Assembly (NCBI RefSeq): GCF_030144855.1
Contig: NC_082727.1
Span: 18,786,001 to 18,850,000 of the forward strand
DNA: 64,000 nucleotides
Reading direction: 5' to 3'
Source: Hypanus sabinus
Lineage: Eukaryota
Positions 28,501 through 31,500 of the stretch are shown here, piece by piece. Made by a program: the position numbers and the translations under genes. The notes below the pieces were generated by a model that was not told the DNA's origin, did no database searches, and saw nothing but the letters and a program-made list of their open reading frames with translations. Position 1 is the first letter of the stretch. Every line of letters starts with the position of its first letter.

Positions 28501-31500
28501 AGACTTTCTCTTGTTTGTGGTTCTTAAAATATATTTCCCAATTACTCTTAATTTGTTTCCCTTGTTATACCAGTTCTTTATTTTTCCAAATACTCCCATT
28601 GTCAACTATTGCACATACTAATACAGAAATGGAGAAGTATTTTGGTGAGACCTGCTTGCATGTCTAGGTGAAGGATGTGCTGGCATTGGGGAGGGTACAG
28701 AGGAGGTCACAAGAATGGTCATGGGAATGAAAGGGTTAATGTCAGAGGAGCATTTGATGGCTCTATGCTGGTACCTGCTGGAATTTAGAAGAATGAGTGG
28801 GGAATCTCATTGAAACCTATTGAAAGGCCTAGAGTGGATGTTTCCTATGGCGGGCGAGTCCAGGACCAGAAGGCGCAGCCTCAGAATCGAAGACTGTCTC
28901 TTTAGAACAGAGATGAGGAGGAATTTCTTTAGGCAGAGGGTGGTGAATCTGAAATTCTTTGCAACAGGCAGTTGGGCAGGCAAGTCATTGGGTATTTTTA
29001 AAGCAAAGGTTGATACAGTTGAAGTCAGAAGTCTACATACACCTTAGCCAAATACATTTATACTCAGTTTTTCACAATTCCTGACTTTTAATCCTAGAAA
29101 ACATTCCTTGTCTTAGGTCAGTTAGGATCAGAACTTTATTTTAAGAATGTGAAATGTCAGAATAATAGTAGAGAGAATGATTTATTTCAGCTTTTATTTC
29201 TTTCATCACATTCCCAGTGGGTCAGAAGTTTACATACACTTTGTTAGTATTTGGTAGCATTGCCTTTAAATTGTTTAACTTAGGTCAAACGTTTTGGGTA
29301 GCCTTCCACAAGCTTCTCACAATAAGTTGCTGGAATTTTGTTTACAGACAGATTATTTCACTTTTAATTGACTATATCACAACTCCAGTGGGTCAGAAGT
29401 TTACAAACAGAATCAAAAGAAATCAGCGAAGACCTCAGAAAAAAAAATTGTGCACCTCCATAAGTCTGGTTCATTCTTGGGAGCAACTTCCAAAAGCTGA
29501 AGGTACCACGTTCATCTGTACAAACAATAGTACACAAGTATAAACACCATGGGACCACGTAGCTGTCATACTGCTCAGGAAGGAGACGCATTCTGTCTCC
29601 TAGAGATGAACGTAGTCTGGCATGAAAAGGACAAATCAATCCCAGAACAACAGCAAAGGACCTTGTGAAGATGCTGGAGGAAACAGGTAGACAAGTATCT
29701 ATATCCACAGTAAAACGAGTCCTATATCAACATAACCTGAAAGGCTGCTCAGCAAGGAAAAAGTCACTGCTACAAAACCGCCAGAAAAAAAACCAGACTA
29801 CAGTTTTTAAGTGCACATGGGGACAAAGATCTTACTTTTTGGAGAAATGTCCTCTGGTCTGATGAAACAAAAATTGAACTGTTTGGCCATAATGATCATC
29901 ATTATGTTTGGAGGAAAAAGGGTGAGGCTTGCAAGCTGAAGAACACCATCCCAACTGTGCAGCATGGGGGTGGCAGCATCATGTTGTGGGGATGCTTTGC
30001 TGCAGGAGGGACTGGTGCACTTCACAAAATAGATGGCATTATGTGGAAGGAAAATTATGTAGATATATTGAAGCAATGTTTCAAGAAGACATCAGCCAGG
30101 AAGTTAAAGCTCGGTCGCAAATGGGTCTTCCAAATGGACAATGACCCCAAGCATACCTCCGAAGTTGAAGCAGAATTGCTTAAGGACAACAAAGTCAAGG
30201 TATTGGAGTGGCCATCACAAAGCCCTGACCTCAATCCGATAGAAAATTTGTGGGCAGTACTGAAAATGTGTACAAGAGCAAGGAGGCCTACAAACCTGAC
30301 TCAGTTACACCAGTTCTGTCTGGAGGAATGGAACAAAATTCCAGCAACTTATTGTGAGAAGCTTGTGGAAGGCTACCCAAAACGTTTGACCCAAGTTAAA
30401 CAATTTAAAGGCAATGCTACCAAATACTAACAAAGTGTATGTAAACTTCTAACCCACTGGGAATGTGATGAAAGAAATAAAAGCTGAAATAAATCATTCT
30501 CTCTACTATTATTCTGACATTTTACATTCTTAAAATAAAGTTGTGATCCTAACTGATCTAAGACAGGGAATGTTTTCTAGGATTAAAAGTCAGGAATTGT
30601 GAAAAACTGAGTTTGAATGTATTTGGCTAAGGTGTATGTAAACTTCTGACTTCAACTGTAATTACTAAGGGCATTAGAGGTTGTTAGTAGAAGGGAGAAG
30701 GTGCATAGTGTTGGTCTCTGCACCCTGTGTTACAGTGTTATTTTTATTTAGAGATACAGCACAGTAACAGGCCCTTTCACCTCAACAAGCCTGCACTGCC
30801 CAATTACACCCATGTGACCAATTAATATCCTAACTTGTACGTCTTTTGAATGCGAGAGGAAACAGAAGCACTTGGAGAAAACCCATGTGGCCATGGGGTG
30901 AACGAACAGACTCCCTACAGACAGCGGTGGGGATTGAACCCGATCTTACAGCTGCTCCTGTCAGCTCTGTTACTGTGCCGTGTTGTTGTGGTTATGGGAG
31001 TGATGTCACATAGGCTGTTACTGTCTCAGTAGTTACCTTTGTTCCTGTCTGTTCGGTAACGTTTCATTACAGAATTAAACTCGGCGCCCATATTCAGTCC
31101 AGATTAGGACACTGCGGAATACATATAGAGCCTGTATATACATTGCCCACATTTTACTGCACATATCCGTAGAATGTTGCATTTCCATTCACTTTAAGAC
31201 CTTTGCTTGTAGTTAGAAAGTGGAAGCAGAAGACTACGCTGGGATCCCCTGGACAGTGGCAATTCGAGGTGGGGGAAGCGTACTCTAGAGTTGTCGGGAG
31301 CCTCGAGCAGCCGCTGATACAGGAGAGTAGCAGCAATGTAAGTGCTCGTAGAGCAAGTGGTTTAAATGTCTCTGCCAAAGCATTGTAAGATTTATTTATG
31401 TGGGTGCACCTGTGGTACAAGGGTAGATGGGTAGTTTCTGTCAGTTTAGGAATACATGTGTACAGGGAGAGGGCAGGCATTCGTAAATTTACAGAGACTA

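Follow-up and report, generated by a model that had tools for sequence, protein, structure and literature searches.

The 64-kb stretch of DNA analysed here (hereafter, the window) carries, at positions 29016-30658, a transposon that resembles the salmonid-type Tc1/Sleeping Beauty (SB) elements, and the question that it raises is how such an element came to lie in what appears to be the genome of a cartilaginous fish. We conclude that it is very probably a dead, rearranged SB-clade copy in an elasmobranch, belonging to a family that was horizontally transferred, formed a subfamily of its own and decayed neutrally. For the one copy studied, the horizontal transfer itself is well supported.

Anatomy of the element

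The element at 29016-30658 is a Tc1/mariner transposon of the SB clade, with a TA on both sides, IR/DR ends and a frameshifted transposase gene. The TA target-site duplication that characterizes Tc1/mariner DD34E/Tc1 elements is found at 29014-29015, where the sequence reads ...GGTTGATA followed by CAGTTGAAG, and at 30659-30660, where it reads CTTCAACTG followed by TAATTAC. The terminal 27-mer is matched perfectly on the right and with a single mismatch on the left, for a chance expectation of 0 matches, and the two inverted arms, each 329 nt long with the TA counted, are 97% complementary.

The right IR (30431-30658, plus strand) contains an inner direct repeat at 30432-30453 and an outer one at 30629-30650, and is ~95% identical to the right IRs of two reference copies used throughout, a metagenome contig that carries an intact transposase gene and is the closest sequence to the window copy (L001), and a contig of Coregonus suidteri (L003). 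Elements of the IR/DR subgroup have IRs of ~200-230 bp with two direct repeats each, as does the window copy, in which the left IR copies the right one.

Arm complementarity and a three-way alignment with L001 and L003 identify the left arm (29016-29342, minus strand) as an inverted right-end copy: its part at 29016-29243 matches the right IR, and 29244-29342 corresponds, in reverse complement, to the final 99 nt of the transposase CDS. The outer direct repeat of this arm, a transposase binding site (29024-29045, plus strand), and its inner direct repeat (29221-29242) belong to one repeat family (D2) with a spacing of 197 nt, which the right arm mirrors through another (D3). Only the inner 72 nt of the distinct left IR are left in the window copy (29338-29409, plus strand, 93% identical to L001 45-116), and this remnant includes the inner direct repeat of the true left IR at 29392-29409. 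The inverted right-end copy is joined to the remnant by the 5-nt microhomology TTGTT, and contigs from other organisms run on into the canonical left IR before 29338. At 29338-29356, the remnant keeps the original left IR stretch TTGTTTACAGACAG, which we take to be the HDR enhancer motif of SB. Judging from these repeats, the chimeric left arm may hold three binding repeats together with the HDR enhancer.

The remnant ends at a deletion junction (29410-29411), where ~172 bp of the canonical copies, comprising the 5'UTR, the ATG and the first codons, are gone. The BLASTN alignment here passes from L001 position 116 straight to 289, and before 29411 contigs from three organisms read ...CTTGACATCATGGGAA.

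No further SB-like fragments were found elsewhere in the 64-kb window. Other repeats in the window include a 3-kb G+C-rich minisatellite (19510-22599), with a GC content of 0.72 in 20001-22000 and strong G and A skew, which in several frames gives rise to artificial ORFs 786-1029 aa long. A strand-asymmetric satellite of at least 18 kb occupies 46000-64000 and reaches past the window end; its GC skew is ~-0.69 throughout, and it has a higher-order periodicity in which the same long pseudo-ORFs recur every ~5.7 kb.

The transposase pseudogene

Three-frame translation and codon-aware alignment to the intact L001 ORF place the transposase pseudogene at 29411-30430 (plus strand), where it begins near codon 3 and continues through to the stop. 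The reading frame is broken at 29439 (+1), 29496 (-1) and 29784 (+1), premature stops occur at 29560 and 29623, and there is an in-frame insertion (+3) at 30083-30085. The open C-terminal ORF of 157 aa (29957-30430, plus strand) matches Pfam DDE_3 (E=4.6e-13), and the piece upstream of it matches HTH_Tnp_Tc3_2. The residues D153, D244 and E279 of the SB transposase are aligned without indels in the window copy, such that the DD34E signature is readable; the HTH and the DDE domain are both present, the latter with a spacing of 34 residues from the second D to the E, though the gene is broken. An autonomous element has an intact ORF of ~340 aa with a start codon. Here, the ATG and the 5'UTR are deleted and three frameshifts and two stops interrupt the frame, so that the window copy is unable to make transposase.

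When aligned by codon with the intact 340-aa gene of L001, the pseudogene differs at 81 positions, of which ~5 fall at the non-homologous deletion junction. These differences are spread 29:30:22 over codon positions 1, 2 and 3, and 22 are synonymous as opposed to 59 non-synonymous. Given this even spread and the synonymous to non-synonymous proportion, the coding change is neutral decay with no sign of purifying selection, and there was thus nothing to hold the sequence conserved. The differences in the C-terminal ORF had been ascribed, in a preliminary description made from the sequence, to decay after insertion. The neutral character of the change bears this out, but part of the differences is subfamily history, being shared with organism A (see below) and by both arms of the element.

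Assignment to the Sleeping Beauty clade

The best protein matches of the open 229-aa stretch of the transposase are intact 340-aa proteins at 86-87% identity, and at the amino acid level the window stretch shows 86% identity with the cloning-vector SB transposase (P0255). The named members of the 90% clusters of the two best proteins are exclusively from salmonids (Oncorhynchus, Salmo and Hucho), together with the SB vector, whose entry reads "transposase [Cloning vector pT2/Gene-Trap]". At the DNA level, the window copy is 92.6% identical to L001 and 90.5% identical to the Coregonus copy, in each case over 1251 bp with the right IR included. Identity declines to 82.7% for a Logan contig (L004) whose protein cluster has Prochilodus, Sparus and Dicentrarchus members, and to 78% for the Prochilodus copy. 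As an aside on the Coregonus sequence (CM072220.1), its positions 897-2486 in L003 are annotated as a 251-aa "hypothetical protein", the copy is itself decayed, and it is flanked by an ankyrin-repeat gene and a UfSP2 peptidase gene.

In a maximum-likelihood tree, the window copy falls in a clade with 100/99 support that contains the SB vector and the salmonid, Prochilodus, Sparus and Coilia sequences, whereas the sequences from the teleosts Nothobranchius, Astyanax, Pangasius and Pogonophryne and the frog Tc1 sequences are outside it. Inside the clade, the place of the window copy is a polytomy, outside both teleost subclades. According to Jia et al. (2022, PMC9777934), coding sequences are >80% identical within the SB clade, and identity falls to 61% when SB is compared with SB-like elements and to 52-54% for the SB group against the ZB group; by both its identity values and its grouping in the tree, the window copy belongs to the SB clade in the sense of that survey. 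The close resemblance of the ends, the right IR and the transposase to salmonid-type Tc1/SB that the preliminary description had pointed out is given numbers here (90.5-92.6% for DNA, 86% for amino acids), and its estimate by eye of about 20 differences in the 157-aa ORF agrees with a count of ~21 against a natural intact salmonid-type transposase (P0001).

Host of the element

Two kinds of sequence in the window inform on the host. The first are CR1-like LINE copies with long open reverse-transcriptase ORFs, one on the minus strand (14441-16249, 602 aa) and one on the plus strand (26772-27485, 237 aa). The best named relative of the 602-aa ORF (14444-16249) is a gene model of Hypanus sabinus, the Atlantic stingray, at 83%, followed by matches in Chiloscyllium (78%), Mobula (56%) and birds (near 45%), and a 92% match sits in a protein cluster that holds an H. 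sabinus protein. The H. sabinus gene model matched at 83% is annotated as STARD3NL, and this annotation probably takes in a LINE fragment, as the match is a piece of the model.

The second are exons of POLL, the gene for DNA polymerase lambda, on the minus strand at 8545-9081 and, for the BRCT-linker exon, at 10498-10989. In a search of 1.8 billion proteins with the BRCT exon (10501-10989), the best representative was catshark POLL, which was also the sole match with E <1e-30. Among the named POLLs compared, a set with one ray (Narcine) and no Hypanus, the whole 162 aa of the exon aligns only with those of sharks and Narcine, at 51-59%, and the alignment with gar, carp, frog, bird and mammal POLL is confined to the BRCT core. 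For this gene, a value of 51-59% to the shark and ray POLLs compared makes the BRCT-linker exon rather divergent.

Judged by these sequences, the host is an elasmobranch rather than a teleost, and most like a stingray. The preliminary description had made its proposal of horizontal transfer conditional on the host not being a teleost, and the LINE and POLL exons, which place the host in the cartilaginous fishes, answer that point.

Excess similarity over vertical descent

If the element had been present in the ancestor of jawed vertebrates and had merely stayed similar in rays and teleosts, its divergence should be weighed against that of host genes. We compared four-fold degenerate sites in the host POLL exons and the orthologous exons of gar, which, as an actinopterygian, is separated from rays by the same distance as teleosts are, and in the transposase between the window and L001. 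The two POLL exons differ from those of gar at 0.67 and 0.63 of their four-fold sites, that is, they are saturated, with nucleotide identities of 60.6% and 74.7%. In the transposase, only 9 of 120 four-fold sites differ (0.075), and nucleotide identity is 92.6-93.3% in three long blocks. The transposon has thus diverged far less than host genes have at their neutral sites, and it is an elasmobranch copy within a clade of teleost sequences, which is incongruent with host phylogeny.

In favor of such common descent, elasmobranch genomes are said to evolve slowly. Against it, the POLL exons of the same host are saturated relative to an actinopterygian, whereas the broken transposase has reached just 0.075; moreover, the substitutions in the transposase show no purifying selection, the non-coding IR is ~95% identical, and the 2022 survey (PMC9777934) records no SB-clade element for Chondrichthyes. 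Taken together, POLL saturation, the low transposase value, the neutral pattern and the IR identity exclude vertical inheritance for practical purposes. The preliminary argument that similarity extending to the non-coding IRs is beyond vertical descent is therefore upheld in quantitative terms, with 0.075 vs 0.63-0.67 at four-fold sites and an IR identity of ~95%.

Insertion site and the possibility of contamination

The element splits the 3' tail of a host LINE (28745-29013, resuming at 30661, plus strand), as seen in an alignment across the site; paralogs of this tail occur in the window at 13359-13500 and 24077-24312. Compared with these two paralogous LINE tails, ~8 nt (GGTACTTG in the paralog) are missing at 29015/30661. 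Tc1 integration normally deletes no target bases, and this gap exactly at the insertion site may be copy-specific variation.

We compared the window with reads from sequencing runs of four organisms, designated A, B, C and I, none of them the host individual itself. Reads of B, C and I cover only 29023-30678, at a depth of 10^5 to 10^6, and leave the flanks uncovered. In organism A, both flanks have high depth and the element has low depth, the element depth in B, C and I being hundreds of times that in A. At 29242, 29690, 29692, 30112, 30321, 30431-2 and 30576, the window has the same letters as A, whereas B, C and I carry another letter in >95% of depth. From what their reads cover, B, C and I appear to be teleosts, and A appears to be an elasmobranch. 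The co-occurrence in organism A of host repeat families and subfamily letters favors a resident elasmobranch lineage of the element.

These observations also bear on whether teleost DNA, from prey, laboratory carry-over or index hopping, could have been stitched into an elasmobranch contig during assembly. Salmonid-type runs carry the element at enormous depth, such that DNA of this kind must be common in sequencing centers, and no sequencing run was found in which the unique flanks of the window and the element occur together (<=0.40 of words). Against this, both flanks are halves of one host LINE tail with a TA on each side, the two arms have 13 differences in common along with a rearrangement unseen in canonical copies, and organism A has host-type flank repeats in addition to the subfamily letters. 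Contamination is accordingly unlikely, and we assign only a very small probability to an artefact of this kind.

Contamination by an SB vector was considered separately and rejected: the gene is decayed, has subfamily-specific changes and sits in a TA inside a host LINE.

Proposed route of transfer and mechanism

With the element accepted as a resident of an elasmobranch genome that arrived by horizontal transfer, its likely path can be outlined. The family would have entered the ray lineage out of, or by way of, an SB-clade pool circulating in ray-finned fishes and would then have formed a subfamily of its own, with the window copy subsequently decaying neutrally. While the family was live, its transposase would have bound both direct repeats of either terminal inverted repeat, and the excised element would have been pasted into a TA, which was thereby duplicated; the window element landed in the tail of a host LINE. 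Having complete binding sites at both tips, the window copy could have moved only with transposase from another copy, that is, it would have been mobilized in trans.

Both the timing and the direction, from ray-finned fish to ray, are proposed rather than observed. Since the tree leaves the copy unplaced inside the SB clade, the donor, as far as sequence relationships indicate, need not be a salmonid. The transfer could be real and yet have taken another route, with the elasmobranch lineage passing the element to ray-finned fishes, or with both groups acquiring it from a third source, for example a parasite. The polytomy that sets the ray copy outside both teleost subclades agrees with this, and parasites with salmonid-type Tc1 are documented, albeit for another Tc1 group (PMC3516227). 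Nevertheless, the SB clade is on record from 107 species in 33 orders of actinopterygians but from no chondrichthyan (PMC9777934), and sequencing depth over the element is hundreds of times higher in B, C and I than in A. The species record and the depth contrast make ray-finned fishes the likelier reservoir, and we regard the other routes as improbable.

History of the copy

In the three-way alignment of the arms with the right ends of L001 and Coregonus L003, 13 of 327 positions differ in both arms, and each arm has a few private changes over the same 327 positions (left, 5; right, 4), with none in L001 and 6 in the 327-nt right end of Coregonus. The shared differences imply that the lineage was already ~4% off the salmonid-type sequence when duplication of the right end took place, and the private ones that each arm has changed by ~1.2-1.5% since the duplication. 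If neutral change is assumed to run at about 1e-9 per site per year, the arms would be on the order of ten million years old and the lineage several tens of millions. With the slower rates often claimed for elasmobranchs, both ages would be older.

Because the flanks are one LINE tail with a TA on both sides, the composite element probably went in as a single piece. With one copy studied, conversion of the left end in situ is also possible.

More tentatively, the window copy could represent a transitional form of a ray-specific "right/right" SB subfamily, in which a transposase-bearing element had its left tip replaced by the right end in inverted orientation, and the ancestor of short right/right elements; we consider this a possibility worth stating but on balance doubtful. 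If true, a natural SB-type transposase would be mobilizing elements without a canonical left IR, following what would be the earliest documented case of the SB clade reaching cartilaginous fishes.

Comparison with known systems

The 2022 survey reports the SB clade from 107 actinopterygian species and one mollusc, SB-like elements from actinopterygians, one bird, one echinoderm and one cnidarian, and, as its chondrichthyan record, a ZB-like element in one species only (Jia et al. 2022, PMC9777934). PCR for the salmonid-type Tc1 group was negative in the cartilaginous fishes tested by Kuraku et al. (2012, PMC3516227), and cartilaginous fishes go unmentioned in Zhang et al. (2020). Our search for Tc1/Sleeping Beauty in stingrays, sharks or Chondrichthyes found no literature report, which is weak evidence, since subscription journals were mostly outside its reach. 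That Tc1/mariner elements pass horizontally between aquatic vertebrates is already established, and what is new here is the host group only: the copy would widen the host range of the SB clade, which in the 2022 survey comprises ray-finned fishes and one mollusc, to cartilaginous fishes. It is also a clean, quantified case, in which host genes are saturated and the transposon is 92% identical. The right/right rearrangement is a less ordinary feature than the new host class, and this architecture bears on how strictly SB-type transposases depend, in nature, on a left end that differs from the right.

In its general build, the window copy corresponds to SB and salmonid-type Tc1 elements, with a TA duplication, an IR of ~228 nt, outer and inner direct repeats and the DD34E signature. 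Its terminal 27-mer is one base off the SB end in a primer described in PMC5224488, and its layout is the IR/DR layout of SB-type elements given in the same source. It departs from them in having an elasmobranch host, a broken ORF with the 5'UTR and ATG deleted, a left end that is an inverted right end reaching 99 nt into the CDS, and subfamily-specific letters at 13 of 327 arm positions.

A close precedent is provided by the teleost-lamprey transfers of DTSsa1 "Group 1", which likewise involve >90% DNA identity across a split of >400 My, and for which Kuraku et al. (2012, PMC3516227) invoked horizontal transfer in water to account for the likeness of the lamprey elements to those of teleosts. 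DTSsa1 is a separately named salmonid element (PMC3516227). Lampreys have thousands of Tc1 copies (PMC3516227), whereas the depth of the element in organism A is modest. The ZB-like Tc1 element (Jia et al. 2022), finally, is likewise a DD34E/Tc1 transposon of the IR/DR type in a cartilaginous fish, but one of a different clade: coding sequences of the SB and ZB groups share only 52-54% identity, as opposed to the 92.6% between the window copy and a member of the SB clade.
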